Assembly: GCA_051530055.1 (NCBI GenBank)
Contig: CM121341.1
Span: 15,664,784-15,728,783 of the forward strand
Source of the DNA: Neoechinorhynchus agilis
Taxonomy: Eukaryota; Animalia; Acanthocephala
Reading direction: 5' to 3'
DNA: 64,000 nt
Below, in pieces: positions 1 through 55,109 of this stretch. The notes beneath the pieces were generated by a model. The model worked only from the letters and a program-made list of their open reading frames with translations, was not told the origin of the DNA and did no database searches. Position 1 is the stretch's first letter. Every line of letters begins with the position of its first letter. Both the position numbers and the translations under genes were made by a program.

Positions 1-274
1 CAGTCAAATCACATCTACTTTGTAATTTTTAGATGTTAAGTATTAACCTAAAAGTAAACTGACTACAAATTCACATGGACCTATTACAGAAATTATAAGA
101 TCTTTATGCGTGGTTCAGCCGGTTGCCTTTTTATCGAGAAGTTTAAGATTAGAATTATTTTTACCATGCGCGGCCGAATGGACACACAGTCCATCGATTT
201 CGGTCAGGGAAAGCGCTGGTCTGCGCTCAATGCCCATGACCGTACATTTATAAGTTTGTACATCCCTCCGGATT

Positions 275-338
275 CTCAGATACCTCCAGGAGGTGGGACT
301 CATCAGTGAGTTTCCTCCCTTCAGCAGTATTTCGTCCC
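275..338 (-). ncRNA. Non-circularly permuted hammerhead ribozyme, best-preserved copy
   Basis: Minus strand reads GGGAC-GAAA-UACU / 15-nt linker / CUCA-CUGAUGA-GUCCC / 10-nt linker / GGUA-UC-UGAG. Stems I (4 bp), II (5 bp) and III (5 bp incl. one G-U) all pair and the core is invariant. Confidence 0.75.
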
Positions 339-364
339 TTTGGTTGTGCATCATAGGCAGTAAC

Positions 365-375
365 GGATTCGAACC
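365..375 (-). promoter_or_regulatory. Pol III B-box in a tRNA-like head upstream of the permuted hammerhead
   Basis: GGTTCGAATCC on the minus strand followed by GTTACTGCC (tRNA 3'-end-like), ~27 nt upstream of the ribozyme. Confidence 0.6.
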
Positions 376-1197
376 CGTTGACCCAACAAACTGGGATCAG
401 GATCCCTCCGGATTTTCACCGGAGGAATGTACAAATTTCTGACCGTACCATCATGAGCATTGAGCGCAGACCATCGCTTCCCTAACCAAAATCAGTGGGC
501 TGTGTGTCCATAATTCAGCCGCGCATGGTAAAAAATCCTCATCTTACGCTTTTCGATAGAAATGATAAGGTTTATTCGTTAGAAGGCCCAAAGCGAAAGG
601 CTTTATCGTTAAACAGATTCCAACTTCCCCGTCCTTAACAGGAATCACATTGTGAAGCTTAAGCTAAAACTCCAATGGGTAAAACTTAGCTTCCGAAAAA
701 AAATTTTATGAAGATTAACAAAAAGATAGCCATCGTTCTAGTCTTCAGTGTATGCATGAAAAATTATAAGCTCACCTATATCCTTTTTCTAAGAAATAGG
801 AATTTGATCGCGTCGCAATTTTGTATTTGTCTAAAGATCGGACTGAATAACAGCGGCGAAAACGATTTCTAATAGTATTAATCATGAATTTGCTAACCAA
901 AAAGACCGAATCCATTTTATTTTGTCTCACAGAAGGTCGAATTCGGATTGCGTTATCGTTTGAACGGGTTGCGATTTCTCGGAGTATTTATTCGAACCTG
1001 GAATCTCCAACCTAAGTGCAATCACATTATGGTATTTATAATACAAGGTAGGCAAGAAGGGGTTAGGATTTAAGGGGCAATTCGTTGAGCATTTAACAAA
1101 ACTGAACAACAGTGGAGAAAGCAATTTCGCGCAATGTTTATCACGAATTCGCTAACCAAAAAGATCGAATCCACTTTATTTCATTTCATGAAGCATC

Positions 1198-2206: not shown

Positions 2207-4757
2207 CCGGTCGATTTAGAAGTGGCTTCACTGATTGACGTTCTAGGACATGAATTTATGACAAAGTAGACGGACTATGAATTGCGTCTCTTTTGTATTC
2301 GGCAATACCTCAAAACTACTTATCATATTATTAGAAAAATGTTGGTTGGAAAACGGGAGAAATGATTAAAGAACTAAAATTCGAAGAAATAACAACTTAG
2401 TGTATTGTCCTAAGAATTCATGTAATATGTCCGGCATCCTCGTCGTGATTTCCACTTGCTTTGCATTTGCAATGACAATCAGCTTTCTTGCAAACGGAAG
2501 GAGCCATTTTTGCGAAAGCGACGGAGTGAAGTTGTGGATGAGGGAAAGCAAAACGAGATTTACTTGTATGCAAGGTCGCGTGGCTTCGACGTGATGTGAA
2601 TTTGTGTAAGGTTGATTATCACTCCGCTGGAACACGCGTAAATCTCGCTATGAAACTTGACGATATTCTCCCACCATATCATCGGTGGCCAAAGAAGTTG
2701 GATCCACTAAACCAAAGAGCTTCTTGCGACTCAAAATAAAAAAGGAATTTTGGATTTTTTTTAAAGAAATGTACTAAATATGTATTAAGCTTCGAAAATA
2801 GTCTATGACAAGTTCATTTTCCTTTAATCTTTGACAATGGATGTCGACGTCTTGAATAAATACGAACCATCCTGTTGACTAAAACGGAAAGTTAGTATTA
2901 AAATCATTTGCGAATATTTCCATGCGAAAAACATGGTTCAGTAAGGAATGTCAGCATCGCGGAAGAGAAATTTTGTTCCAAAAACCGATTGTTCATCATT
3001 TTTTAGGTAGAGATCAAAATTAAGATTCGTCCCTGCGCTTGGCACGTAAATAATTGACATAAATGCTGAAAAGTCACAATCTTAACTTTTCAAATCGCAT
3101 GGGTGATTTTTTTATAATTTTTGCAGCAACCTTTTTGATCGCTATTCCACACCAAAAAAATATTTTCTCAAATGCCATAGACGAAGAAGTTTATCATATG
3201 GCTCACAATAGACGTTCCTGTAACAACACTGAGGGCGCAAATTGTTGTCGGAGTTACTCGTCATTGGCACTGTTCTTGATGAAACGAGAAAAAACGAACT
3301 ACTCACCTTGGTTCGCATCACATTGTTTCACGGCAGTCATATCAACGATTCGGCGAAACGAAGTACACTTTTCCTACCGAAACTTGCAACGCTTAAGGGA
3401 TACCAAACACACAACTTCCAAAGATCTCACTTTCAGGTAGATTAACATCGTGAAAATTCCCCCGTCGAAAAATAATGAAAAATACGATTTACATACTTAT
3501 ATCCCGGCTCCGTCTATAGATATTGATCTCGTATTTAGACTGTTGTGTTACTGGTGTCTGTAATTGAGATTCACTGTAGATTTTCTTCAAATGGTCGTGG
3601 AATCCAATTTCGCCTTAAAAGTTATTGCATCGAATTCTTGCTATACGAGAAAGCTATCTATCTCTGCATTATAAAATCTGAAATTTGAGCTTAATGCAAT
3701 CGCATTCTTTATGAAACCTTTTGTTCGCGCCCTGCAACCTGCTAATATATTTAAAATGTTATAATAAAAATAGAACGAAAGGTAAGACATATAATCTTTA
3801 ATTCTGCGTTTGGTAAGTATTCTTTTAAATGTTATGTTTGTTCGGCAGCTTCCTTGATGGCCGCGGCATTGCCGCGTTGGATCGCCGCGCTGATTCGCTG
3901 CAACAGGAAAGAATTTGCTGTTTTACGTCAGAAATTGCTATTGAACGATATTCAAAACCAGAAAATATTATTGTGGTTCATCGCAGTGTAATATAAATCG
4001 CTTTATTGTGGTATTTTTGTCACTTTTAAGTCTTTCTAATTTTCAATCATTCTGTTGGTTTTTTGGTTCAAGAACATCAACTTTTCATGTACACTTATAA
4101 TTGATAATTTTTCCGATGAACGTAACTTTTCATTGCTTATGGCAATAAAAAAAGATGAATCAGAAGGCAATTGTTTCGCCAACTTAGATAAAACTAAGAA
4201 AATAGTGAAAGTTTAGCCCATTCGAAAGCAAAGCGCTTTAATATGGTATTTTCGTTACTTTTAAACTATAATTTTTATTGGTTCTGTTGCTTTCAATTCA
4301 ACTGTGATTTCTCAGATACATTGATGAACGTAATTGTCGCCTTTTGCACAGAAAATCGTCAAACCAGTTGGTAGTAGGTAACCCGTTGATCTTAAAACAA
4401 AAGTTGCTTTGTGGGTAAATGTGTACACGCTTAGTTCTATTGTTATTTTGAACACAATCTGTTCTCAATTGATATCAAACGATAAAATACAAATACCTCG
4501 ATCCGTAGCTCTATATTTATCAACTTCTCGCCACTGCGACAAATCAACTTAAAACGAATGGACCTTAAATTTGAGAATATTTCTTTTAATGGCCAGTGTG
4601 CTGTCTTTCAACTAAATAATATTTTATTGCAAAGAAGTTGTTTATGGATTCTTTTTTGTTTATTGATATAGAGATTGATTTGTTATTACTCTTTCACAAT
4701 ATTTCGTCCGTCTCGTCAGACTTCTTTAGGTCTAGGATAATTTATTACTCTGACCTA

Positions 4758-4808
4758 CCTTTAAGACCTGAAGAAGTCCGACGAGATTGGACAAAATATT
4801 GTGAAAGG
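4758..4808 (+). ncRNA. Minimal Penelope-type hammerhead, degenerate (G12A)
   Basis: CUGAAGA-A-GUCC-gacgagauu-GGAC-AAAA-UAUU, with palindromic AUAU stem III and flanking ccttt/aaagg pairing. Confidence 0.5.
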
Positions 4809-5117
4809 GTAATAATAAATCAATCTCTATATTACCAAATAATATTTTATCGACCGGGGGATTATGTTCACCATCACCATTTAATATTTACCATTTCGAA
4901 AGATCTTCTTGATATGATTTGTTCACAAGTTTATTCGTACATTGAAAACCAGAAGCATTGAATTTAATTGATCCCCGATTTTCTGTTCGATTTCTCGATA
5001 AGACGTTCTTTTAGAACAACGGCTATTGGATATCCCAGCTACGAATAAAACAACTACGCTTTTCTCCTTTCTTTCGCACGTAGACATCTCCTTCCAGGAC
5101 CGCACTGAATCTTCAGA

Positions 5118-6527: not shown

Positions 6528-6699
6528 ACCGCAAAAAAAGCACATTTTAAGTGTATATGGGAGGAATGAGTGGTCATTTACAGTTCATTTGTCCATCATG
6601 AGCATTGAAAATTTAAACTTTACGACGCACTACAACTCAACAAAAAAAGGTTTTTGTGCCCCTAAAAAGTTTGAAAGCAATAGGGCGAAAAGTTGCGCT

Positions 6700-6958
6700 T
6701 TGCCAAGATCAACTTCGAAATTGCGAAAAAAAGGCGCCGACGAAGTTACCACTCCTGCGGAGCGAAGGAAAGTTGCCAAATACAGCAACTTCACGCAGAT
6801 TTCATCTTTGCGCCGTTCGGCGTCGAAATTTATGGGTCGCTGGGGGAGACGGCTTTGACGCTGATCAAGAGAATAGGGTGGAGACTGGTGAGGATTACGA
6901 GGAATCCTCGCGCCCCAATGTTCTTGCGGCAAAACATTAGTCTTGCCGTGCAACGGGA
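6700..6958 (+). mobile_element. CRE-like non-LTR retrotransposon 3' fragment (restriction-like endonuclease C-terminus)
   Basis: FAPFGVEIYGSLG...FLRQNISLAVQR, homologous to 19859-20653 and 32730-33275. Confidence 0.8.
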
Positions 6959-7045
6959 TTCCCGATGAAGGGATGAAACTCACTGATGAGTCCCGCCTCC
7001 TCGGGAGGTATTTGAGGATCCGGACGCTGATGCGTACAAACTCAT
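6959..7045 (+). repeat. 5'-truncated copy of the permuted-hammerhead repeat (GAAA strand lost)
   Basis: gaaggga-tgaaa-CTCA-CTGATGA-GTCCC-gcctcctcggga-GGTATTTGAG-gatccgga...gtacaaactc. Confidence 0.8.
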
Positions 7046-7280
7046 AATCGTATGATTAAAGGTTTCAAATTATTTTATGCGCTTCCTTGAACCATATCGG
7101 CTGGCTGTATGCCCAACAAAAAAATTATGAACCGTGGAAAAGACCTCACTTCAACACGGAATAAATGTAACCGAATGGCAAGACTTCAAAAAATAGAATA
7201 CAATTATATTGAGTTAAAAAAGCCCAGTGGTTATCATACTAATAGTTATTTTGGATTATTATCCTCGGAGGAAAAGAGAA

Positions 7281-11796: not shown

Positions 11797-12691
11797 ATTT
11801 ACAACCTGGTAAAGTCAATAAAGTCATGTCTTTTTTGCGCGGTCAAATAGTCAACGCCAGCCGTAGTGGCGAAATATTAGGTTGTTACGGTTGTAATGTG
11901 GTCCGCGTAAGTTAAGATCCATCTGTAATCAATGAGGACTATTAATTTTAGACCAATTTTAGAATTCTTAAGATTATTAAGACCTGTTAGGAAATTCGGC
12001 CCTTTTGTTAAGTGTGTGCGTGTTATTCTTCAAAATTCACCCATGATTTTTTTAGGAACGAATCCACTAGGACTACACAGATAGGTTACAAAAGAGAAAA
12101 CTAATTTAGGATAAAAGGATAACTAAATTTTCGCCAAACGAATTGATCGTACTCAATCGTGTTCAATGACGCATACCTCTGGCTCATTGTGTGCTCTATA
12201 CTTTTGATCATTTTCCTGAAAGGAGTTTAGAATCCGTTTGGCGTCGGCTTCATTTACTCCTGGAGTGTGCATATACGCCATCGCTCGCCTTATCTACCGC
12301 AACTTTTTTTAGCATAAGTAATATTAAATAGAAACGTACCCGAAGCTCACTCATTGACTGCATGAGATTCTCAAGTTCTTGGGTGGCTTCGTCTATACCG
12401 CCAGGGAATCCATCATTGGATAACCTAGTCGTTTTATGTCAACTTTACTTGAGACCTAAGGAACTGACCGTTCGCGTCTAATGACATGGTCGTCGGTACT
12501 GGTGTAAAGCTGGTCGATAGTATTGATTGATTCGTCTACCGCGATCAATTGAGCCATCCCTTTTACTCCATTGACCGCGTTTTTATCTGTTGGAGAGAAT
12601 CCTTTAGTCTGCGATCAAGATCTTTACTAACTTGAAGACCTAAGTGAGATGGTATCAGTCGATTTTTTACGGATCACGTTAAAGTGGTTCA

Positions 12692-12763
12692 GGGTCGAAA
12701 TACGTCGATGAACGAAAGTATGAAACTCACTGATGAGTCACACCACCTCGACAGGTATCTGAG
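12692..12763 (+). ncRNA. Permuted hammerhead copy with intact core but two stem II mismatches
   Basis: GGGUC-GAAA-UAC...CUCA-CUGAUGA-GUCAC...GGUAUC-UGAG. Confidence 0.6.
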
Positions 12764-12849
12764 GACCGGATGTACGGATTTTTCTTTCGCCCAAGATACC
12801 GTTTACGTGCTAACCTTCATGTTTGGTTCTATGAGCCTGAAGTTCGCGT

Positions 12850-13226: not shown

Positions 13227-16200
13227 ATGAGGTCACCGATTTTATCGGCCTTGGCGATGCACAGGATTGTCTATTTTCCCCTGTGGTATAGACTGAGGAA
13301 AGCAAGAAGACAACGATGTGTTTGTGTGCTCATCGTGGTAATAACGTTTGTTTTTATCGACTTGTGCCGTATAATGCAAAAAGATAACAAATCAATGTCG
13401 TCACAGATTCATGGTGAGTGTGGGCGTTTTAAAATTCTTTCATATCGATACGCCTATCGAAATATAATTTGAAATTGCTTGTTGAAAAAAAATTAAGTTG
13501 CTTTTTTAGGTGATATTAAAAACTCTCAATTTTTAGTTGATTTCAATGCATACTTTTGAACGAGCGCAAAAATTGATTTTCGGTTTTAGAATTATTGGTT
13601 TAGAAATCTTCACTCTGTAAAGAGTTTATTAAGAACGTTCTACGAACCTCCTATGGGGTTCATCATCAGTTTGTCAGTAATCCTAATCGTATACCCCGGC
13701 ACCTCCTCACATATCGACATTATTTTCTTTTTTGATAGTTTTTCCACTCAAGATTTTAATTCACTAATTTATTTCCGATGCTCACGTATTTAGAAACTTG
13801 AAGAAATGTCGGAATTATCCGATGTGAAATATCGGAAATAATTAATTAAATTTAAATAGGAGGGGTGGCGAAACTAAGAAAAAGAATCTTTTTCCCCGAT
13901 AATCAAAGACAAAGTTATTTTGTGTGGAATTAGCCGAAAATTTAAACACGGGAAGAGGCGTGAATGTTTATAAGCTCTTCGTGTTGAAAAAAAACTGATA
14001 AAGCTGTAAAAAAATTTAATTTATAATTTTTATGCTTACTCGTTTTTCCTATTATTTATTGCAAAGAATTTTTTTAAGATCGCAAATGCTCACATTATTC
14101 TAAATTCAAGAATAAGGACGTTTCCTTAAGGGATGTTCCAAGTTTAACGATAAGCCGCTTACAAGGACATTTCTCATATTATTACAAATCTCAGCTGTTT
14201 CTAGTCATTTCTGACATTGACGCCCCCATGAATCTTTGCGTTTTGTTTCATCAATCTTAACAGGTTTCACATGAAAGTAGATCGATTAAAACTAATTTAA
14301 ATAACTAAACGTCTTAGTACTTGAGATTCGATTTCATTTTTCACCTATTTATGAAGAAACTTACTTGAAATTAGCTCTAGGTTTAGAGAATTAAGTGAAA
14401 CAAATCGACGTGCTTTTAAATTAAAACGCAAATTTCGTCCGTTTAATGCTCGTATTCATCTTTGAAATTGACGTACATCAATGAAATTACTCTGGACACT
14501 TTCATGGTGTTCATTTTAAAACGGATTCTGATGGAAGTTTTAAACTCACATTTCAGTATTTTTCGAAAATGATCTGCGAATCTTTGTACGAAAAACGTAG
14601 TTATTATGTTTCTTATCCAAAACTAGAAAACTTTCCCATTTGAGTTTCGTTCCACTGTCCCTTTTAAGCAGATTAGTAACGTATTTAAGAGCAAAGCTCA
14701 TAGGACGCTAATTGTCCCAACGAGTCGTGGTGCGTCTCTTGTAGCTTTGAATACATTCAAGTGGCTTATTGGAAAACCTGTTTTTATATGGCGTAAAAAT
14801 TAAAAGAATTTACTGATTCCGATATTTCGGCACGGTTGTAAAAGTATCAGGTGCGGACTAAACACTTTTACAACCTTGATAAACGCGTACAAGATTGTGG
14901 CTCCGAAATATTGGAATCAATAAATTCTTTTAATTTTTACGCTATTTAAAAACATGAATAGTTCAATCTTCATACATATTGGAAAACCATGGCAAGCTAG
15001 TTCTTTTTTATGTACATAATATATATTTTTTCCAAATAAGTCACTAAAGTCGAAATGATTGTTCCAGTTTAGAAGGCGTACAAGCGACGGCGCGCTTATG
15101 ATAACAAATAAAATGCCACCACTTTTCCACTTGTTTGCTAAATCGAAAAATCCCTCGAAAAATGCTTTTTTTTCACAGACAATTACGGAAAAGGAGGATT
15201 ACCTGTAATATTACCTGAGTCCCTAAAGTCAGAATCTAAACGGCGGTTTAATGAGAACCAATTCGATGTAGTAGCGTCAGACTTGATAGGAATATATCGC
15301 GACGTACCGCATCTTCGACAAAGGAAGTATGCATCTTTTTTGACTTTAGGAATCATCTTATTCACTAGCTTCGTTTGACAAAGGTGTGGGATTATTAGAA
15401 CGTCCTTATCCGAATTGGAGCAGCTTTCGAAAGAAGCTCGAACAAGCGTTATAATTGTGTTTCACAACGAAGCAAACAGCACACTGCTTAGAACAGTATC
15501 AAGCGTTCTTCGTCAAACTCCTTCGTGTCTTATTCACGAGATCATCCTTGTTAACGACGCCAGTACAGTTGGAGGCCATTACTTGGATTCTGAAAATCTT
15601 CAACCAATTCTTGATGGAATCTCAATAGCGACCACTCCACATAAGTGTGGCATATCACCAATACCAGTAGTTCTCATCCAGAATCAAGAACGAGTCGGAT
15701 TAATAAAGTCACGATTAATCGGAGCTAAAACTTCAACCGGTCAAACACTCACGTTTCTGGATGCTCATGTTGAATGCACAAAAGGATGGCTTGAGCCTTT
15801 GTTAGATACCGTTCTTAAATACAACCGAAGTGTAGCCGTGTGCCCGGTCCTTGATGTGATCGATGACACTACGTTTGAGTATCGCATCGGATCCGAGAGC
15901 ACTGTGGGTGGCTTTAATTCAATGCTCAATTTTCGATGGTATTCGATTCCTGAACGTGAGGTAAAGCGAATGAGACACAGTGGAGACCGATGCATGAAGT
16001 CTCCAACCATGGCCGGTGGACTTTACACGATAGATCGTGAGTACTTCTTTAAGATTGGGTCGTATGATGAATTGATGGAAGTGTGGGGTGCTGAAAACCT
16101 CGAGATATCGTTCCGAATATGGATGTGCGGCGGTCAGGTTCTTATTGATAGTTGCTCTCATGTTGGACACGTATTCCGAAAACGAAGCCCTTATACTTTC

Positions 16201-17481
16201 CCTGGCGGAGTAATTTATGATCGGATCCTAACTGTTTGTAATTTGAATCCCGAAAGTAGTAGGTCTTAATGGGAAAGAGAACGTAATCATAATCTTTTCA
16301 TAATGCTTGAAGAAAGCGTATTTAATTTTATCGTGACAGCGATTTTCTATTATTTTCGATATTTCCACCCTTTTTTGTATAAGCTAACGGCTGAATTTTC
16401 TCATAACTGTAAAAGTTTATAAATATCACAATATTAATAAGGATCCTTCTGAACTTTTAAATCCTACAGTTTTGGTGTGGAATAATATTTTTGAAAGAAG
16501 TAAGTAATGCATACCGATGTGTACTGGAACCGAGTTGAAGTTATGTTTCAATCAATATTTTCAGTCTTAAAAAGTCAATAATAATGGATGCACCGTTTCG
16601 CGAACCATGTATTAAGATCCGATCATCGTAAACTATATTATTGGGCACAACTTAAAACGACTGGTTCACGTATGGCTGGAACCCGAACACCTCGAATTTG
16701 TCCACCAATTCGTTCCAGGTACGATCATTTGCATTATCTCAGAACATCTTAAATGCACCATTCGCCCCATTAAGCTATCATTAACGTCGACGGTGGTGAT
16801 CTATCAAGCAGAAGACATCTTCGCACAGATATTCTCAAATGTAAATCGTTTAATTGGTACATAGAAAACATTTATCCGGAAGCTCCGATTCCATCATCCA
16901 ATTGGGCTTTGTACAAATACACGTTCGGGATGCTAACAAACACTCATTGGCGAAAATGTGTCACCTATAACGGAGATGTTAGTACGATGAAGTTTGCGAA
17001 CGATTACCAGGATACCAATTTAACAAATTGCTCAAAACGACCAAACCAAGTAGGATTTTTTTAAATCGTAAATCTCGAACATCAACCTTTTCCACTGAAA
17101 GATTTTCTTTTATAATCGGATGACGGGTCAAATAAGGTGCAACGAGGCTTGTTTGCAAGTTCAACGAAATGGACGCGTAGTCCTTGCTTCGTGCCGTGAT
17201 TCACGTGAGCAATCTTTCCGAATTCAATTCGAGAATGATGAAGAACAGAATAACGTGAGTTTGTATCCATTTTATAAGTATTTTAGCTTTTTTTGTCCTC
17301 GTTTGAGTAATCGTGAGGTCCAAATAATTCAATGTTTTCAGAAATGATCGTACTTTGTAAACTTATTGACCTTTGGCTACGACATAGTCGGCAAAATAGA
17401 AATTATCACGAATTCTACACTTTGTCCTTTTTCGATTCTAAGCCAGCAATACCAACTGAACCCGAATTCGTCCGAAACTGA
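13227..17481 (+). CDS. GALNT: Polypeptide N-acetylgalactosaminyltransferase, multi-exon
   Basis: Putative TM first exon (13227-13415), [29 protein letters not shown] (DxH), [30 protein letters not shown] and a lectin-like 3' part. Terminal exons are uncertain. Confidence 0.88.
13629..13675 (-). repeat. Degenerate arm of the hammerhead fold-back family
   Basis: Minus strand aaaCTGATGAtgaaaccccataggaggttcgtagaacgttc resembles the arms at 58.6 kb and 63.2 kb. Confidence 0.5.
13724..13885. mobile_element. MITE family B, internally deleted copy
   Basis: Shares attcactaatttatttccgat and gaaatgtcggaattatccgatgtgaaatatcggaaata segments with other copies. Confidence 0.65.
14780..14953. mobile_element. 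MITE-like element, family A
   Basis: ~50-bp TIR gtttttatatggcgtaaaaattaaaagaattt...ccgatatttcgg. Relatives at 26034, 27621, 43930 and 60415. Confidence 0.75.
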
Positions 17482-23865: not shown

Positions 23866-25797
23866 TTAGAAATCAAAAACGATTTTTAAGTTTGTTCCAT
23901 TAACGTTTATTTGCCCAATTGATTTCATTTTTAAGAACGGGGCGTTAAATAGTACGAGAATTGGATTGTTTGACACGTCCAATAGTGTTAAACTTTTTAA
24001 CTCAGACAGATCTTTCGAAGGTACCGAATGAAGTCCATTATTTGAAAGGCTAAGGAAAATTAAGTTGTTCAAACCACGAAAAGAATTTTCATTGTCCATA
24101 TCGTTAAGCTTGTTATGACTAAGATCCAACGCGATTAGTTTTCTCAAACGGGCGAAGGTGCCACGAAGTATGGTTTCGATTTGGTTGAATTGAAGGCTTA
24201 GAAATTTTAGGTCTCCGAGACCGATAAAGTCATAACGATCAACATGTGAGATTTCGTTGTGGCTCATATCAATTGATCTGACGACCGTGTATCCATCAAA
24301 ATTATAGATATCCTTTATAGCTTTCAAGCCAAGTGAGGATGCGTTCAATACAAAGCAGGTCATATTTTCTGAAGGTTGCACGGGAAAATTTAAGGCTGTC
24401 GCAATAGATTTTGGAATTTCATCAATTCGCTGCGTCATATCCATTTTTGCCTTTATAGCTCGAACCTTGTCGTACGTTGCAGTCGAAATGCTGTTATTAA
24501 ACATCTCCATATATCCCACTCGGTTTTTGCCATTTTTATTAATTACTAGTTCGCCAACATGGTTTTTCGCTATTGACAAATAACCAATATGTGGAAGATT
24601 TTCAATTAATTCGGGATTGAACGATTCCAAATAATTTTCAGCCAACAATAACACCTTTAGATTGACATTATTTTTGAAGAGGTTTTGTGGTAGGTCATTG
24701 ATTCTGTTTCCGCTTAGAAAGAGAGATGTTAATTCTCTTAAGTTCCACAATGCCTCTTCATCAATCACTTCGATGTCATTGTACGACAAATCAAGTTTCC
24801 TAAGACTTTGCCAATGGTATAGGTCGTTCGAACGCAACGCGGAAATTCGATTGCCCTTAAAGTTAAGCGATACCATGTTTGCTCTTGTAAACGAATTACC
24901 TTTTGGAACATTTTGCAAATTCGCTTCCAAAATACCAAAGTGCTGAATATTCGGTGCCATTTCTAGCATACGAGAGTTGATAAAGCTGGTAGTTCCACCG
25001 TGAAGCATAAGCTTGCACAGCTTGAGAAAGCTACAATTTTGCTTGAAGAAATCTGCTAGATCACCAGAATTCGAAAATTCCAAAGAGCGCATATTATCCG
25101 GTTTAATATAAAATGATTTAAGTGGATTGCCATACACGCTGACTTCCTCAAGCTTTGTTAAGATTGAACCATCACTGAATTTTGCATTCTCGATGAGATT
25201 GTTGGATACATCGAGAGTTTTCAAATTACTCATTTTTGCGATTATCTCAAAGCTATCGTCCTTCAAACGATTGTTGGAAAGGATGAGATTATGCAATTGC
25301 GGCAAATGGGCATTCATTCTTAAGCCTAGCCGGTATATCTCATTTTCCTTTAAATTAAGTTCCTCGAGATTGTGAAATCCCTGAAATGCGTCATCTTCGA
25401 TCCTTTTTATCAGTCCGTTTTGGATGCGAAGCTTTTTGAGATGTTTGAACCTTCTCATCGCAGATTTGGTCAGAGTTGACAGTTCATTGTATTGTACGTC
25501 TGGCCTAAAAACGAACGCGTCATTGTGAGGAATAATAAAAGCCAAATCGATTGGAATCTCGTTCAAATATGCACCTTCAACTATAATACTGTTAGCTTTG
25601 GGCTTCTCTCTTACACACATGATCAGGTCAATTAGCGGTGATCCGATAATTCCCGTTCCACAATAAATGAAAATTTTATAACCTTTGTTGGCACCGAACT
25701 GAGCACATTGATGTTCCACTTCGTCGCCATTGACCAATGCAGATAGCAACAAATATGTTACCAATGTGCCCGACAAGAAGGAACGCGTCGAGAACAT
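23866..25797 (-). CDS. Signal-peptide-bearing leucine-rich-repeat protein (Toll/slit-like ectodomain), 643 aa, single ORF
   Basis: Hydrophobic N-terminus, N-terminal Cys cluster and many LxxLxLxxNxI repeats. No TM or TIR domain in the ORF. Confidence 0.85.
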   Translation of the reverse strand: MFSTRSFLSGTLVTYLLLSALVNGDEVEHQCAQFGANKGYKIFIYCGTGIIGSPLIDLIMCVREKPKANSIIVEGAYLNEIPIDLAFIIPHNDAFVFRPDVQYNELSTLTKSAMRRFKHLKKLRIQNGLIKRIEDDAFQGFHNLEELNLKENEIYRLGLRMNAHLPQLHNLILSNNRLKDDSFEIIAKMSNLKTLDVSNNLIENAKFSDGSILTKLEEVSVYGNPLKSFYIKPDNMRSLEFSNSGDLADFFKQNCSFLKLCKLMLHGGTTSFINSRMLEMAPNIQHFGILEANLQNVPKGNSFTRANMVSLNFKGNRISALRSNDLYHWQSLRKLDLSYNDIEVIDEEALWNLRELTSLFLSGNRINDLPQNLFKNNVNLKVLLLAENYLESFNPELIENLPHIGYLSIAKNHVGELVINKNGKNRVGYMEMFNNSISTATYDKVRAIKAKMDMTQRIDEIPKSIATALNFPVQPSENMTCFVLNASSLGLKAIKDIYNFDGYTVVRSIDMSHNEISHVDRYDFIGLGDLKFLSLQFNQIETILRGTFARLRKLIALDLSHNKLNDMDNENSFRGLNNLIFLSLSNNGLHSVPSKDLSELKSLTLLDVSNNPILVLFNAPFLKMKSIGQINVNGTNLKIVFDF

Positions 25798-26684
25798 TGC
25801 ACTTAGTTAAGAAGATTTCTTCAAAAATGCCCAGGTACTTATGGTAATGGTATGAGGTGAGTAACTCCTTTAGCAATGCGTTATCTTTAGAATTCTAAGA
25901 AATACACGTTACTTTTTGTGAAGAACTCCGTAGTAGTAAATGAACCTACGATGTCAAAAAATTGTACAATCCGTCACGCATTTTGAAACCTATGTAAATG
26001 ATCAGTTGGTAGATTGTCGACTGATTTTTCAACGCATTCCGATATTTCGGCAAATTATTGTGCTTTCATCAAGGTTGTTCTCAGAGGAAAATACAAGTAG
26101 GCTTTGTACCTAGGCAGAAGATTGTGCCGAAATATTGGACTTCAAAATAAAATCATTTTAATTTCTTCGCCATAAAACAACCAATATGAAACCAGAATTT
26201 CAATCTTCGTGAACAATGAAAAGCAAATATTCTAACTCGTGGCAAGTTTGTTAACGTGATATTTTTAACGGGAAAGAGATAGTAGATTATTTGAACAACA
26301 ATCGTTGATTAAATAGCCATATAAATCATAAAAGCATGAATATTCGTAAGGTATAGAATCGTCTTTAAACTTCTTTGTTTTTAAAGAAAAGCGTCTTCGA
26401 TCTTATAGCATTTTAGGAACTGTGAAAAAAGCAGTAAGATTATTATCGTTTTTTTCGTGCATGTTGATAAGACTAAAGTCGTCTACGTGATCTGATCATC
26501 AATCGAGTAGTCTTATATAGAAAACGATTTCAAATTTTTGTTCCAATTTTTTAACCAATGTGTGGCCTTTTATCACACGGCTGATAATTTTTGGGCACAC
26601 ATCTTACCGATTTGGTTCAGAGAAGTAATTCAATTACTCAATGCACTGAACCAGCCGGTACGAGTTTGTACATTCCTCCGGATC

Positions 26685-26748
26685 CTCAGATACCTCCAGG
26701 AAGCGGTACTCACCAGTGAGTTTTCTCCCTTCAGCGGTATTTCGTCCC
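26685..26748 (-). ncRNA. Permuted hammerhead copy with a core A6G change
   Basis: GGGAC-GAAA-UACC...CUCA-CUGGUGA-GUACC...GGUAUC-UGAG. Confidence 0.6.
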
Positions 26749-26760
26749 CTTTTGGTTGTG

Positions 26761-26827
26761 TCGAGGTGGTTAAGTGGAATGACGCCCGCGATCCCGATTA
26801 AGGGTCAAGTGGTTCGAATTCGTTACC
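26761..26827 (+). repeat. tRNA-like head of the hammerhead repeat, inverted relative to the ribozyme
   Basis: A-box-like TGGTTAAGTGG and B-box-like GGTTCGAATTC. Its reverse complement matches 361-397. Confidence 0.6.
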
Positions 26828-27620
26828 CTTACATTTAGAATATGGTCCACACGATGAGGCTTATCTTCAGCAGGACCATATTCTAATATAGTAGTAACTT
26901 TCTGATTTCAATCTTAATTCATTTGACTCTTTTCCATCCTAGCTCGAACCAACGGCCCGCAGTGGATTAAATTTCTCTTTAATCGTCGACACAGGGCTAA
27001 CGATTACGGTTTTTGTTTTCAATTTAAAAAATTGGCTTAAATCGACGTGTCAGTTGTTATTTGTTGAAAAATATAACGTTAACAAACTTTTTGTTCACGT
27101 AATCATTTAAGTTATTTTCATTTAAACAAACTGGAATGTAAAAAATTAACCACCGACAAAGATGCAGCGTAAATCGTTTATGCTCCAAGAACGATTGACC
27201 ACTAGGTTCTGAGTACAATTTAAACTATTCTATTCTATTTTATACTAACACAGATAAGAAACATTATTAAGGATTGTAATACTTTTGCAGAAGTCTCGTT
27301 TATTTCCAATATGAACAATTGCCTTCTAAATCTTAAATAGTAAAAATAATTAATGTGTTAAACTGTAAAAACGGCTTTCCAGTTTTCAATATTTGTGGTC
27401 AAAACTTTATTTTGAATTGAGAACCGAAAAAGTACATAAAAAAGCAGAAGCATAAATGTAAACGGATTCGACAAATTAGAAGAGAAAAGTGAGTATGCAT
27501 TCAGAGGACGAAACGCCGGAAAGGAGAAATTCTGACGGACAAACAGTCATTAATGTTTAGTGTCCAGTTAGAATATTCGCATTTCATTGTTCACGGAGAT
27601 TGAAATTCTAATTTCATATT

Positions 27621-32580: not shown

Positions 32581-32729
32581 GCGTTCGTCTCCATAATAGT
32601 GGGAAGAAACGTAGCCAGGAATTGTCGATGATGGAGGAGTGTAACCATGTTTCCGCAGTGACCAAAATATCTGCGTTGGTGGAAGAGACTAATAGCGAAA
32701 TATGATCTATTCCGTGTAAAAGATTTCTT

Positions 32730-33275
32730 TTTTTTAAAGATCAAATAAATGTATTCAATCAATCTTCATTTCTCGACAATTAACACACTCACCACCTCCC
32801 GCCGAATTCCAGCTTTTGTCCTTCCTCGACCGTCGCCATCACGCTGGCAGCATTGCCCCGTTGTACTGCTAGCGAGATATTTTGTCGAAGGAATACGCCT
32901 GCTCTTGAGTCTCCGGTTGCCTCTCTCAATTTCTTCGAGAGATCCTGGAGCAGAGAGAATGCCGAGCTGCCGAGCTGCCGAGCGCTCCATACGCCTCTAC
33001 CCCAAAGGGGACAAAATAGTGAGCCCTCGATAAGTGAAGATATTTCCGTATTTTCCGCCCTTCCGCTTCACTGGCGGCACCACCGGCGATTTCGAGGGAG
33101 TAGGGGATGTTGCTGGCTGCGAGGGTATCCACACACGTGGCGTCCCAGAGAAGGCATTTGCCCTCCCGCCACGGGAAGGCTGAAATTCCATCGGGCCTAC
33201 GGCCGTCTAGTCTACAGAGGTGGGCGGGTTCCAGGATGTTCGGGAAGTTCGCCGTTCTCAACGCCCGGAAAAGAA
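32730..33275 (-). mobile_element. CRE-like 3' fragment
   Basis: LEPAHLCRLDGRRPDG, WDATCVDTLA, FVPFGVEAYG, FLRQNISLAVQRGNAAS and an A-rich tail. Confidence 0.85.
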
Positions 33276-33390
33276 TGGAGGGAAATGGTCGTGTGAATGA
33301 ACTTGAAGGGTATATAGTTTGCTGGATTTGGTTGGTGGAAGAGCTCAATGGATGAATCCTTGAGCGGCTCTTGAGTTCGCGGTTGCGCCG

Positions 33391-40544: not shown

Positions 40545-41474
<930 letters not shown>

Positions 41475-46518: not shown

Positions 46519-49500
46519 TTATTCGCGGTGGTATCTTTCGTTCACGATCAGGCTTACCAATGACGTCCATCCGGTAAAAGGTTTCCCGAACTTCCCTTCT
46601 CCTGTTTGATCATCATACTGCTCAAATAAAAATCCAGTCTTTACGAATTGTTCATGAATATTGAAAAGGAGCTTTTGCCGTACACGTGTATAAACCTCTT
46701 TTAGTCTCACTTTTAAATCTTTACTAAGACTGTAGGGTTCATTTATATATTGATAGAATGAACGAAGGAACATATAGTTCATATGAGGCCAGATTGCACC
46801 TCGCCAATAAGGTGGATCATCTGGGGTATTTCGAGCTTGGTAAAAAGATGAATTGGGAGATAACGAGCGAAGACCATAATCCGAGATCAAATGATACTTG
46901 TCGATCAAGTCCATTGCGGCATTAAGTCTACTTTCCAATAAACATTACGTAATTATTGACTATTACAGACGCCGGATATCAATAATTCCGCACTTGGGTT
47001 TTAAATCAGAGTTTTGAGGTTCAATAATCTGAAGCATTATCGGAAATAAATTCACGTATCCGAAATGTTTATCAATAAATTGGAGGCTAAAAGGCTGCCC
47101 GCTCAATTGTCGCCTGCAAGTACCTCTTTGCTGATTTGTCTGCTGATCAATCACGACTCCCTCGACTAGATTGAGATCTTCTGTATGAACTCCATAATCC
47201 GCATACATTTCCCCTGTCCAATGCAATGAATTGAGTAATCCGATGAGTCGCATGTACTCGTTTTTAAACATTATGCTGTCTTCTCCTTCTGAAAGTTTAG
47301 ACAGAATTCGAGCTGCGTAAGTAATCCACGAAAAAAGATCCACGTGGCGTTCATTAAGATCGGAGGGGTGACTTGAACGAGGATAATCATCCAATCCCGA
47401 AGGAAGCGTTGTTGGATTTAAAAGTTCTTTGTACTCGTCGGCAAAACTCTTTCGGCCGCGCCACATATAGGACCCGTCCGGCTGAGACTGTGTTTTATTC
47501 AAGAACATATACCATACTTTCAATCGATCAAATATAGATCGTTTCCATTTAATAATACGCTGCCGATCTTGAGTTTCTTCGATTTTACGCACGAGGTTCA
47601 AAGCGGCGCCCATCCATACCGGTGGATTCGCATGCTTGGAATATTGAATTAGGAATTCGAGCGGAACAAGAATCGATGCCTCATCACCCACTATAAGTTC
47701 TCTTGGAATCCATCCATCCTTGTTCATCAGGTTTACAGTAAGGGATAATCTTACAAAAAGGGTCCGCATTGAAAAAAGGAGATTGAGTCGTTGACTTCAA
47801 CACGTGATTGCATTTTCACTTTCTCAAAGTAATGGAAAATTTAAAAAATAATTTTTTAGGCCATGTCGAAATACAAGTAGAAAAAAAAGGTAATAATTGG
47901 TTTCAAGCGTTTGGCAGCAACAAAGAATTCGTCGTATTTTCCATCAAGAATTATTCTCACGAGGATTCCAGTATGAAGTCACTGTGTTGACTAAAAAGTT
48001 TATTCGCAATGTTCGTTGTGTTCAAAAAGGCTGTTTACCGGTCAACTTTCTCAAAACTAATTGCATTGTATATTGACAAATTATTCACCTCATTAGTCCC
48101 ATATAGAAGATTATCACTTAATAAGTAATTTGAGAGGATTGTAGCGGCGAGTTGATGATCAAATTCCGCAATTACAAAACTATGGAAAGCTTCATCCCAT
48201 AGAAAACCACGAGGAAACTTTGATCTACATGGAGTCGCAGTGAGAAGATTAAATGGACCAAAAGGTTTGAAACCAGATTGGGGCTCCTTGTTATCGGTTT
48301 CGCTGGAGACCATCATCGATCCTGTGAAATAACCAATACCGCCAATCAAATCACTTACAGCTCGTAACACCATAGTTCGATAATCACCAAAACCATACGC
48401 CTCATTAATCTTCCTTTGAAACTCGCTAACTTTTTGTTCAATTTGCACGTCGGCGCCATCATTTAAATCAAGTTTCACATCACAAGGAAACGCAACACAA
48501 GTCACCATGATAACCACATTCTTATGTACATCAGTCTCAGTACCACGGAACTCAATAAATCCTCGTCCTCTAGCCAAATGATCAATTATCTCGTGCTCTG
48601 GTCCGAGCTGGATGTGAGAATCGGTAGCGAAAAGAGAGTATAAGACACGTTGATTAGCTGACATCTTTAATTTAAAATTTTTGAGATCCTTTGTCCAGCC
48701 TTCAATAAACATAAATCGCTTCGACTCACGGATTCGTTTGATCCACCCGTGAGAATCTTGATTTCCGGCAATCCAAATAAGACTCGGATGGCTCGTCGTG
48801 TTGTCCGCTAAAATGCGTACTTTAACCGTCCATGAATGTCCGCCATTCTTAATATATTCTGTCCTTAGAGAAAATGTATTGTCAGCGAGTTCTTGAATTG
48901 CGAGCTCTCGAACATCATGAACAATGTAACCAAAATGCCTTAATCGAAATCTATTTAAATGATCAAGATAATAGTATGAGCAATGGTGAAAACCAAAATA
49001 GATTGCGGACCATTTTGTTATAAATGCTAAAGTAATTAAATCCGGATTATGATCATAAAGTTTAAATTTTTTATAATCGTGACCACCTCAGTGAAAGTTT
49101 TGATTTAGATATCGTGCAATTGTATTAGCCAGAACTGGACTCAAAACCATAAACAGAATTCTCCAAATCGCACTAATCTCCTATTAAAATCGAAGAGCAT
49201 TATTTCTCCAAGGATCTGGTCGACAAAATGAATTTAAGAAAATTCGCATTAATTGAAAGGAATGCGCCACAATTGTTCATATTTTGAACTCTAGCAATAA
49301 AGAGAAGAGCACTATTTGTTGAAGGAATCTATGAACAATAAAACCAAAACTGCCCGAAATTCATAACATTTCTCAAGTACACTTAAATAGATTGCACAGC
49401 ATCATCTCGTAGAGTTGTCTTATACCTGAGATTGAACTTTCCCTGCGTTATGATCTCCAACTGGTCAAACCATGCCAAGTCAATTGTTAAAGGTTCATGG

Positions 49501-51815: not shown

Positions 51816-53898
51816 TTACTTCTGAAATTTTTTACGCAATGCTTTGTTCACAAAAAAGTACTTTTTGTATTTAAGCGAGCATTGCACTGATTGTGGCTCT
51901 TCGGCATTCAATTTTTCACTTAATGAAAGCACCAGCTTTCCATCTTTTTCGAATGGTCTATCAATGACACCCGTTTGACCGTTGTCCAAATCAACTTTCA
52001 TCTTTACAAAGGCTTCGACAGCAAAATTGTTCTTGAACATTCCACTAGCTATTATGGCATAACTTGAGATCTTTTTCTCTATTCGGCCGAAACGCTGGTG
52101 CTCATTATATAGACGCAAAACCGACAGGGGTACATCATTATGGCATTCTGGCCAACCGAACAGTTGGCGACCATAGAAAGCGAGGCGGCAAATTTTAGAA
52201 TTCTTGTCGACATCAAGTCTCGATGCAAACATTATAGCATTTTCTGGCCAAAATATAAGTTTGCTTAATTGGCGTGACGGTCACTTTATGAAGAAATAAA
52301 CTCAAATAATGACCGTCATTACTCTGAGGAGCATATAGAAATCTCCCTTTTCCGCTCTGTCAATTTCTTTCACAAAAAGATGATCGTGATCAAGATTGCA
52401 TTCATGACAACGAAACATCGAGACTATCCTACATATTACTGTATTATATGCTACTGTTAAATGATACCTTTGGTTAACTCTTATCTTCAGCATGAAAAAA
52501 TCCACGATTTTGGTTTTCACAAGAACAGACTTGTACTTCTTAACAGAATTAGAATGGCATGCAATACCTCGGTTAATGTTGACTTGAGTCTTTTTAGGCT
52601 GCAGTTCAATTCCTGCACGATCGCCTGTTCTCAAACTCGCCATTGATTTACCGTATACTTGTAATGACCGAATTCTCCATAAAGTTGAATCTATTTCAGG
52701 AAGTTCTATTCTGGAAAGGAGCTTCGTTCGACCATGTTTTACCACTCCTGTAAGTATAGTCGAACCGCTGTGTGTCTTGAAAACATGATCTCTGGCAGTG
52801 AGTGATAACGAACTGAATAAAAAGTGTTTACTTTCTTTTGGCAGTTTTGCCACCCCGAATTTAAATTCGCTGATTTATTTCCGATATTTCACATCTGATA
52901 ATTCCCACATTTCCCCAAGGTTTTGTCATTGCTCCACAAGTGTTGAAGTAGCAAAGTTACAAGTAATGGCAAGTCTTGATAATATCGGAATTATCCGACA
53001 AAATATCGGAAATAAATCAGTGATTTTAAATCCAGGATGGCAAAACAACCAAAATAAAGTCTCGTTTAACCTGAAGACAATAATCAAAAAAGTTTTAGCG
53101 AGCTCATAAAAACTAACTAATAGAAATAGATTGAAAGGTAACGCACAGTAGAAATGTTATATGCGAAGAGTGAGTCCGGAAAAGATTTTTCAATGGACTC
53201 TGGTTTAATATTACACTTAATTTTATCAAAATAAGCAAACAAAAGAAACAATGGTATTAATTCTCCCCATATTCAGGATAGAATCTCAATCACTGCTTTA
53301 TATAAAACAAGAACGGATCATCCATATTTCTGTGAGGAATATAAGATAGCTCCAGAAGAGCATTTTTTAAATTACTAATAAGTTGGTTTTTGGTCGAGAT
53401 TCGAACAACTTTAATGCACGTAAACGAAGATCGTTTCTCAAGCATCGATCGGACTTTTCTCTCCATCATATCAACAACAGTTTCGTCGCATAGATCCACT
53501 TTATTCAGAGCAACTATCAAACGCTTGATAGAAACTATTTCTCCGATTACCATACATTCTCCTGTTTGAGTTTGAAATCCTTTTACTGAATCAATGACCA
53601 ATATCATAATATCAATTATTTGGGCTCCGCCGATAACCGTACGAATCAACGAAGCTTTACCTGGAAAATCGACAAGACTAAAGCGCACTTTGTTGTACCA
53701 GTGTGATATTTGCGCTGGAGCTGCTTCTGTAAACGAAGAAAATCCTAAATCGAGAGTAGTACAACACGCTTTGCTCTGTGGATCCCGATCAAATGACGCC
53801 GTTCCTTCCTCGGCGCTCAATGAACGACACAGTGATGTCTTACCGCTGTTAAGATGCCCAAGAACGCCAACGTTTAAATTCAGAATAGTATCAGACAT
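51816..53898 (-). CDS. EEFSEC: Selenocysteine-specific elongation factor, 3 exons, divergent GTPase motifs
   Basis: NVGVLGH..SGKT, TLDLGFS, ASLIRTVIGGAQIID, QTQTGEC, LRTGDRAGI, H.TV.YNTV, SRLD....CRLAFYG, LKYKKY. Confidence 0.88.
52831..53060. mobile_element. MITE family B inside the eEFSec intron
   Basis: ggcagttttgccacccc.aatttaaattc...ccccaaggtttt...ggatggcaaaac. Confidence 0.75.
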
Positions 53899-54794
53899 TG
53901 CAATAACTTAACTTTATGTGATATCAGTTGCGCCCTGTTCTCAATGAGTTTCTCTTACAATGACTGTGAGTATGATATCATAACTATGGCGTCTTCTAGC
54001 TGCTAAGTGCTTACGTGGATATACAACATATACCAGGGCTTATAGTAGACAAGGTTGATAAAAACTAAATCAGTTAAACAAACCTAACTTTAATTCCAAT
54101 TGAACGGGAAACATTATTAGGAAGTTTCACACGTTAGATATTCAACAAAATCAGAATAAGCTTGATGAAAAGGACGTCAATCCTGTCTATTTATTATCCA
54201 TTATAGTTTGGATCATTTTAGAGCACAAACAAGTTAGCAGCGGAAGCTGCTGCATCTTGTGAACAGAGATATCGAACAGAAAATTCGCATCATTTCCTTT
54301 ACAAGAAAGCGTTCAAGAAACGCTGTACTTGTGGTTGTTAATTACGCGTAAACATTTTGGGGAACAAGAAGTATACGTCCGTCATATAAATCGCAAGTAT
54401 GCGCAGAGGAATAAACAAGCTTTCAACCGACGATATATATGTATATACGTGTACGATCGGTGTATATGCTTTCTCGAAAAGATATTTTTGTGTATTTGTT
54501 TTACAGCCTATATTAATGCCTGTCCAATTTTCGTTTTAGAGATCCTGACCGTTTGCGAACGCATAATGACCTTTTCATCCGTTTTCTAGTTGGTATTCGC
54601 CAAAGTGTACGCATTTTTCCCCGTGTGCACTGCCCACAAGGGCAAAAAATGAGATCTTTGGCGTATAAGTGTCTGTTTCATATTGTGTGCGCAAAATATT
54701 TGTAATTATTTATCAAATTGCTTTCCTTGGGCGCACAGCTCACCGATCAGCGTTAGGTAGTAAATGAGTAACTTAGAGCATTAACCGCACGGTC

Positions 54795-54855
54795 ACGAGT
54801 TTGTACATCCCTCCGGATCCTCAGATACCTCCAGGATGCGGGCCTAATCAGTGAG
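54795..54855 (-). repeat. 5'-truncated, core-mutated (G8U) copy of the permuted-hammerhead repeat
   Basis: CUCA-CUGAUUA-GGCCC-gcauccugga-GGUAUC-UGAG-gauccggagggauguacaaac. Confidence 0.8.
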
Positions 54856-55109
54856 GAGGTATGTATAAACCAAAAACCGTATGGTTCAGGGTATCAAAGG
54901 ATTTACTGCGCTTACCTAGCACAGATCGGTGCGAGGATAATAATCAGCAGTGTTATGATGGCCACTTTAATACTCAATAAAAAGTAACCAACTAGCCAGA
55001 CGTAAGATGAAATTAATATCATCAAATCATCGATGTTTTGTTCTATTTCTATAAAGTTATACGTTGGCGAATTCTGTCCCTGGTGTTGTCGTTACTCATT
55101 TATTTATTT

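Follow-up and report, generated by a model that had tools for sequence, protein, structure and literature searches.

A type-GCS hammerhead-like arrangement in the conserved 3' module of a LINE-linked retroposon family of the acanthocephalan Neoechinorhynchus agilis

Genomic setting

The stretch of DNA analysed here, referred to as the window, covers 64,000 nucleotides of Neoechinorhynchus agilis (GenBank assembly GCA_051530055.1, contig CM121341.1, positions 15,664,784 to 15,728,783 of the forward strand). Host genes appear as long open reading frames (ORFs) at 1198-2160, 23866-25797, 40545-41468, 46963-48712 and 53290-53898; those named are GAPDH, a 643-aa LRR protein, WDR5, glycoside hydrolase 63 (two ORFs) and a translation-type GTPase. 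Since these ORFs are long and uninterrupted, the region can be described as gene-dense and intron-poor. An ORF with a glycosyltransferase family 2 domain lies at 15415-16269 on the plus strand, and on the strand opposite to it ARAGORN calls a 97-nt tRNA-Leu(TAA) (15474-15570, minus strand) that is probably a false positive. A short palindromic MITE-like element is found at about 4640-4860, with the arms ...GAGATTGATTTATTATTACCCTTTCACAATATTT... and ...AAATATTGTGAAAGAGTAATAACAAATCAATCTC..., and is unrelated to the retroposon that is the subject of this work. The retroposon and its LINE partner are represented by the following features, in which blocks C, G and S are the conserved segments defined in the next section:

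132-418, minus strand: copy c1, consisting of the central domain and a ~125-nt 3' tail; the sole copy with an intact hammerhead-like motif
418-557, plus strand: inverted copy of the 3' tail of the element, abutting the head of c1 and predicted to pair with 132-271 as a hairpin of ~130 bp
6693-6968, plus strand: ORF fragment, C-terminal domain of a LINE with reverse transcriptase and restriction-like endonuclease; stop codon TGA at 6966-6968
6966-7084, plus strand: copy c7k, the 3' region of the LINE, with block C at 6979-6994 and block S at 7007-7016 (C17 changed to U) and without block G
12636-12824, plus strand: copy c12k, of a divergent subfamily, with an intact core and two mismatches in helix II
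26618-26809, minus strand: copy c26k, with A6 changed to G, a mismatch in helix II and an inverted head segment
36407-36580, plus strand: copy c36k, with a mutated core (UUGACGA) and block S deleted
54757-54927, minus strand: copy c54k, 5'-truncated at block C, with G8 changed to U

Anatomy of the hammerhead-like site

On the minus strand, from 338 to 275, copy c1 reads GGGAC-GAAA-UACU, GCUGAAGGGAGGAAA, CUCA-CUGAUGA-GUCCC, ACCUCCUGGA and GGUA-UC^UGAG, the caret marking the predicted cut. The site can be divided into three blocks and two linkers, all on the minus strand:

326-338: block G, with strand II' GGGAC (338-334), GAAA (333-330) and strand III UACU (329-326)
311-325: linker 1, GCUGAAGGGAGGAAA, 15 nt, variable between subfamilies; its GGGAGG is complementary to CCUCC of linker 2
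295-310: block C, with strand I' CUCA (310-307), CUGAUGA (306-300) and strand II GUCCC (299-295)
285-294: linker 2, ACCUCCUGGA, 10 nt, with a 2-nt indel between subfamilies and a possible local hairpin
275-284: block S, with strand III' GGUA (284-281), U16.1 and C17 (280-279), the predicted cut at 279/278 and strand I UGAG (278-275)

The hammerhead core of c1 is complete (C3 U4 G5 A6 N7 G8 A9, G12 A13 A14, A15.1-U16.1, H17). Helix II (GUCCC/GGGAC) has 5 bp, helix I (CUCA/UGAG) has 4 bp, and helix III (UACU/GGUA) has 4 bp to which A15.1-U16.1 is added; all pairs are Watson-Crick except for a single G.U in helix III, whose two strands are separated by 41 nt. A sequence-only reading of this DNA had reported the core, the three helices, the cut site, the 41-nt spacing and a strand order termed B-A-C, and each of these was found as described once the minus strand was read. 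No loops close helices I and II in c1; GGGAGG of linker 1 and CCUCC of linker 2 can pair with each other, as each can with several other partners.

The GAAA block is followed by the CUGAUGA block and then by the cleavage-site block, each of them uninterrupted, which is the order named type GCS by Eckert, Friedrich, C. Weinberg and Z. Weinberg (NAR 2023; PMC10085705), the paper to which the sequence-only reading had referred. As the three helices are mutually crossing, the G-C-S order is unreachable by circular permutation of types I-III, and the earlier claim to that effect is upheld. Both the sequence observation and its classification as type GCS are correct. In the same study, types SGC and CSG were validated, with significant covariation and with circular-RNA-like sequences in metatranscriptomes, and type GCS is known from a single sequence of Caballeronia peredens, GCS-1, which shows no covariation, is of unclear biological meaning and cleaves at 0.014 per min in 25 mM Mg2+ (PMC10085705). 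The cleavage of GCS-1 indicates that the GCS topology can be catalytically competent, and its case also indicates that in vitro cleavage by a lone match to a descriptor need not mean a ribozyme with a biological role. No later report of type GCS, and none of a hammerhead in an acanthocephalan repeat, was returned by a full-text literature search.

The Rfam hammerhead models (types I-III, HH9 and HH10) gave no match in the window at the gathering score and none with E<=10 in positions 1-1200; that standard models would miss the site had been foreseen, and such a miss is expected for a non-circular permutation. Programs restricted to nested structures are likewise unable to score the hammerhead fold, since cofolding a separate G strand with a C-S strand keeps helices II and III crossing. 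A second block G was sought at two places, namely downstream of block S, which would make the site a type CSG, and in c7k, the LINE-linked copy, on the upstream side; none fits at either.

A dispersed retroposon family

The motif belongs to a family of dispersed retroposons of ~370 nt, in whose conserved 3' module it is located. Fifteen copies were found in ~180 kb: six in the window and nine, reached via related proteins, in three other loci of the same genome. Additional copies were sought via multi-copy ORFs, the other ORFs of the window being single-copy or not on record, and by a metagenome scan for the pattern of blocks C and S, which returned no match and hence no copies from other species. 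Full-length copies are ~370 nt long with fixed ends. Many copies are 5'-truncated, c26k has its head inverted, several copies form head-to-head pairs and one locus (L006) holds a partial tandem; most copies are either single or paired head to head, and the upstream partial unit at L006 is without the motif. The sequence-only reading had assigned the site to an amplified tRNA-headed animal repeat. The amplified animal repeat is borne out by the 15 copies and the tRNA head is not, as neither ARAGORN nor the Rfam tRNA model recognised a tRNA in the head of the element. The tRNA-like traces consist only of a B-box-like GGTTCGAATCC and AAGTGG, and in full-length copies the 5' end of the element lies ~95-110 nt upstream of the B-box-like sequence. 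The tRNA-derived head that a tRNA-derived SINE carries at its 5' end is thus not recognised in this family.

The arrangement of the copies provides several further observations. Head-to-head inverted pairs are found at locus L002, 19457-19648(-)/19948-20139(+), and at locus L005, 2092-2291(-)/2419-2602(+), the inverted head segment in the window lies at 26618-26828, and the partial tandem at locus L006 (500-1250) includes a perfectly identical stretch of at least 68 nt. The recurrence of inverted pairs, the inverted head segment and the partial tandem fit template switching or twin priming by a reverse transcriptase. At c1, the inverted tails at 132-271 and 418-557 are ~82% identical over ~130 nt, and a transcript across 140-545 is predicted to fold into a hairpin of -224.7 kcal/mol (z -18 versus shuffles); judging from this model, the long hairpin could be a source of hairpin-derived small RNAs. 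In full-length copies (e.g., locus L005, 18150-18800(-)), GAGUUUGUACAUUCC is found close to the 5' end and the complementary GGAAUGUACAAACUC immediately follows block S; a long-range pairing of the two would close the central domain. The 5' region of full-length elements resembles a shortened inverted tail. At 6635-7110 of locus L005, a called gene of 126 aa matches Pfam RdRP_1 and may be an endogenous fragment of an RNA-virus polymerase in the N. agilis chromosome.

A retrozyme or circular-RNA reading was also considered, on account of the partial tandem at L006 and of a 17-nt direct repeat, UGA(A/G)AAUCCGGAGGGAU, which occurs just after the cut site and again at the head of c1. Neither was taken as evidence, because the head of c1 is a copy-specific replacement of the consensus head, the full-length copies have fixed ends and the upstream unit at L006 has no motif.

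The LINE partner

The module is not confined to the short elements. Copy c7k (6966-7084) directly follows the ORF fragment at 6693-6968. According to a full HMMER scan, this fragment belongs to the C-terminal domain of proteins with a reverse transcriptase, and it matches the profile of the LINE family with E 5e-29; the matched proteins have a downstream CCHC...RPD...D...E region of a restriction-like endonuclease. Neither the 91-aa ORF fragment nor a 93-aa ORF across the repeat had given candidates in protein searches, so that the LINE domain was identified by the full HMMER scan only. From the stop codon onward, c7k is homologous to the other copies, first in linker 1 and block C, then in linker 2, block S and the tail; this one LINE copy available is 85% identical to c1 over 82 nt. 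As the ORF fragment is followed by the shared module from the stop codon onward, the module can be identified as the 3' end of the LINE, held in common with short non-autonomous elements; this sharing of a 3' module with an autonomous LINE, which characterises a non-autonomous partner, is seen in a single LINE copy. The LINE-linked copy has GGGAUUCCCGA in place of GGGGACGAAAUACC and thus does not contain GAAA, block G being missing at 6950-6965.

The family was then followed in metagenome contigs with a profile of the C-terminal domain of the LINE, and 80 relatives, from samples of diverse kinds, were confirmed. Over the 390 nt that surround and follow their QRGNA motif, no hammerhead-like arrangement was found in any block order, relaxed thresholds included, and CUGANGA occurred at random frequency (6 seen versus 6.6 expected). 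Other N. agilis LINEs of this family, whose proteins end in ...QRGNAASVMATVEEGQKLEFGGRW, have no motif either. Since it is missing from the relatives, the motif is confined to one lineage of the LINE family.

A second and more abundant LINE of the family is present in the window at ~32700-32914 on the minus strand, within the ORF 32926-33348(-); its protein ends in ...FLRQNISLAVQRGNAASVMATVEEGQKLEFGGRW, and this fragment is without a hammerhead-like motif. In the NCBI gene models of N. agilis, fragments of the second LINE are labelled hypothetical proteins.

Chance expectation

The frequency of such a site was evaluated with a descriptor that accepted all six block orders, required CUGANGA, GAAA and UH with at least 4 bp in helix I, at least 4 bp in helix II and at least 3 bp in helix III, allowed G.U pairs and kept the blocks within 150 nt of each other. 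The c1 site is the sole match in the 64-kb window, and the descriptor found nothing else in ~115 kb of other N. agilis DNA or in 170 kb of metagenome loci. Upon 2000 dinucleotide-preserving shuffles of the window, 238 contained one or more matches at the search thresholds and 34 (1.7%) a match with helices of at least 4/5/4 bp. By stricter criteria chosen post hoc, three of these 34 also had no more than one G.U and one also had a span of no more than 70 nt (0.05-0.15%). The corresponding number of chance matches per 100 Mb is ~27 at 4/5/4 bp, ~2 when at most one G.U is permitted and ~1 when the site must also be compact. The quality of the match is unusual for a single window and is not unusual for a genome-wide scan, and chance is not negligible when many windows are considered.

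Conservation, pairing and covariation

Eleven copies cover the region and were aligned to derive a consensus and to assess pairing. The consensus is hammerhead-competent, reading GGGAC GAAA UACC / CUCA CUGAUGA GUCCC / GGUA UC UGAG. As for individual copies, c1 alone passes the descriptor (1 of 15), and two more do so if helix II is reduced to 3 bp; the remaining copies have core mutations, insertions, deletions or mismatches. Among copies in which all three blocks are found, roughly one in two has an intact core, and block G is present as GG(A/T)CGAAATAC in 11 of the 13 copies covering its position.

Block C is the most conserved stretch of the family, with the consensus base in 0.93-0.95 of copies. 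By element of the hammerhead, conservation amounts to 0.88-0.93 for the core, 0.92-0.95 for helix I, 0.83 for helix III and 0.77-0.80 for helix II, as compared with 0.73-0.78 for the linkers and 0.76 for the 29 nt downstream. When the three-block mask was shifted along the alignment, the true placement was the best of 133. The preferential conservation of core over flanks proposed as a check is therefore present, and the blocks are the conservation maxima of the element; given the correlation between adjacent positions and the lower flank values caused by truncated copies, this result is to be read as suggestive, at about the 5-10% level, rather than decisive. Segments outside the hammerhead, namely GAUCCGGA, UGAGGAUCCGGA and AUGUACAAACUC, of which GAUCCGGA and AUGUACAAACUC lie downstream, are conserved about equally to the blocks.

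Overall, 83% of the alignment cells are paired, from 98% in helix I and 93% in helix III to 64% in helix II. The covariation that was proposed as a further check did not emerge among the 11 copies: none of the 14 pairs is changed on both sides and the values are not above those of shuffles, in a set of related copies with low power. Where cells are changed, 8 of 34 still pair, by wobble, which is about the level of random substitution. In particular, a U-to-C change at 10.2 is common to two subfamilies and is without compensation at 11.2.

In c1, the 91-nt region does not exceed shuffled sequences in folding stability (z -0.15), and the RNAalifold consensus is weak (-5.2 kcal/mol). An alternative hairpin can be drawn with blocks C and S as its arms (GGAAACUCACUGAUGAGUCCCG...CGGGAGGUAUCUGAGGAUCC), in which 91% of cells are paired and one compensatory UA-to-CG change occurs. 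For the consensus 48-mer, this C/S hairpin is predicted as the fold of lowest energy (-17.7 kcal/mol), a value not beyond shuffles (z -1.4). In its extended form, it pairs better than the hammerhead.

Interpretation

The data are probably best explained by a fortuitous hammerhead-like arrangement, not kept as a ribozyme, within a retroposon 3' module whose conservation has other causes. The family comprises non-autonomous elements of ~370 nt and a LINE with the same 3' module, the latter encoding a reverse transcriptase and, C-terminally, a restriction-like endonuclease. In such a partnership, the reverse transcriptase would recognise the 3' end of the RNA to start target-primed reverse transcription, and the module would be kept in active source copies because of this need for recognition. 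The module may in part also be, or descend from, coding sequence for the final residues of the ORF. Following insertion, copies would decay, and the truncated, tandem and head-to-head ones would be template-switching products of the same enzyme. By analogy, the intact c1 or the consensus may cut weakly in the test tube at high Mg2+; weak cleavage in vitro by the intact candidate is a minority prospect, likelier than biological use. Some points count against the fortuitous reading. The blocks are local conservation maxima of an element whose consensus is fully hammerhead-competent, and statistics favour neither of the other accounts, the alternative hairpin or protein coding. Moreover, self-cleaving ribozymes are common in retroelements and the GUCC/GGAC pairing of helix II is common in animal hammerheads. 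Taken together, the coding, hairpin and fold data provide the conservation of the blocks with possible ordinary causes.

The rival that the sequence-only reading had put forward is a working ribozyme. In the form considered here, blocks G, C and S would build the three-helix core, either within one RNA as a triple-crossing pseudoknot or by pairing of two RNAs, and cleavage of the retroposon transcript would take place after AUC. Such a genuine type-GCS hammerhead is unlikely, and with it the role that it would have, i.e., the processing of read-through or tandem transcripts, as is done by HDV-like ribozymes in R2 elements and by hammerheads in Penelope-like elements and retrozymes. The retroelement setting and the existence of partial tandem copies are in its favour, as are the complete core and helices of c1 and of the family consensus, and the fact that the three blocks are the best-conserved parts. 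The linkers, of 15 and 10-12 nt, look long enough by estimate to span the helices, and the pairing of GGGAGG with CCUCC, seen by eye, would tie together the far ends of helices I and II. In addition, one type-GCS sequence cleaves in vitro (PMC10085705). However, the comparative data do not point to a working ribozyme: no covariation is found, helix II is poorly kept and the change at 10.2 is uncompensated, only one of 15 copies is intact, GAAA is missing from the LINE-linked copy, the motif is missing from the 80 related LINEs and the fold has a z of -0.15. Competing local pairings are at least equally stable, and the chance expectation is not negligible. Furthermore, a cut at 279/278 would sever the ~125-nt 3' tail that is presumably needed for reverse transcription; trimming of tandem read-through, as has been proposed for Penelope-like elements, is possible, but in the one partial tandem seen, at L006, the upstream partial unit lacks the motif.

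A coding origin is somewhat likelier than the ribozyme, although it also remains on the doubtful side. The blocks would be, or would have been, codons for the last residues of the LINE protein, with block G corresponding to the nearly invariant QRGNA motif (read Q-R-G-R-N-T) and block C to K-L-x-D-E near the C-terminus, and the likeness to a hammerhead would be a by-product of the codons. Indeed, the consensus frame that continues the LINE-linked ORF reads QRGRNTAEGRKLTDE without a stop, relatives end in QRGNA, 11-13 residues, [KR]L[DNE][ED][IL][FY]xL and a stop, those of N. agilis reading QRGNAASVMATVEEGQKLEFGGRW, and two subfamilies are set apart by indels (+2 and +4 nt) after which the frame again reaches the same stop codon. 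Against this, a profile search is significant for the LINE-linked copy only, with a match that ends at QRD, and over this stretch the DNA of the related LINE aligns with the repeat consensus no better than shuffled sequences do. The stop codon of the LINE-linked copy precedes blocks C and S. Within the blocks, third codon positions vary no more than first and second ones, as would be expected of a nucleotide-level constraint. A coding origin was suggestive by eye, with significance lacking at the protein and DNA levels, and is kept as a rival only. Very improbable, finally, is a rearranged relic of a canonical hammerhead, in which CUCA-CUGAUGA-GUCCC-loop-GGGA would be the helix II hairpin, the segment with GAAA and helix III would now lie upstream, and ribozyme action would have been lost. 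By inspection, on which this proposal rests, the subfamily with a CG insert has a GUCCC-GCCUCCUC-GGGA hairpin directly before GGUAUC, and GGGACGAAAUACC lies 15 nt upstream of block C; the canonical order was not found in any copy or relative, and the rearrangement takes several steps.

Significance

Should the family consensus, against our expectation, be an active type-GCS hammerhead that processes LINE-dependent retroposon transcripts in an acanthocephalan, it would be the first eukaryotic hammerhead of a non-circularly permuted type. Eckert et al. left open whether this permutation is biologically real, and it would then have its first natural family in place of a lone sequence. Activity would also settle whether nature uses G-C-S, the sixth possible hammerhead topology; permuted ribozymes would be known from animals too, and a new partnership would be revealed, that of a hammerhead with a LINE of the restriction-like-endonuclease type. 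As the evidence stands, the case is rather one for caution, as chance alone yields a few descriptor matches per genome that have a perfect core and all three helices; such a motif can be multiplied by a repeat family, and it can coincide with blocks conserved for other reasons. As a by-product, the analysis provides a first description of the N. agilis retroposon family and of its LINE partner.

Comparison with known systems

The conserved 3' module common to a LINE and to short elements is reminiscent of the 3' stem-loop modules of UnaL2 and UnaSINE1 of the eel, and an extended C/S hairpin is possible in N. agilis; in contrast to the eel pair, binding by the N. agilis reverse transcriptase is only inferred, and neither the covariation nor the stability of the C/S hairpin is significant. 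HDV-like ribozymes process co-transcripts of R2 and of further LINEs that have a restriction-like endonuclease. The N. agilis partner belongs to the same broad type of LINE, whereas their ribozymes are of another class and lie at the 5' end; Rfam detected no HDV-like ribozyme in the N. agilis loci. The closest parallels in setting are the Sm-alpha SINE-like repeat of Schistosoma, Penelope-like elements and non-LTR retrozymes, in which, as here, a short motif with a GUCC/GGAC-type helix II is carried by a dispersed or tandem non-autonomous retroelement. Their hammerheads are of canonical type I, are recognised by Rfam and have Penelope-like partners. The N. agilis motif differs from these animal retroelement hammerheads in its G-C-S order, in its partner, a LINE with a restriction-like endonuclease, and in that no regular tandem array is seen.

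Types SGC and CSG (HRIMA-1 and its variants) are also non-circular relative to types I-III, and SGC, GCS and CSG are circular permutations of one another. They have covariation and validated cleavage, whereas the N. agilis motif is known from its sequence and is without covariation. The nearest relative in architecture is GCS-1, with which the N. agilis site has in common the block order, the crossing helices, a single intact sequence and the lack of covariation support. GCS-1 is bacterial, lies upstream of a gene and has been shown to cleave; the N. agilis motif, read from sequence alone, lies in an animal retroposon family whose consensus keeps it.
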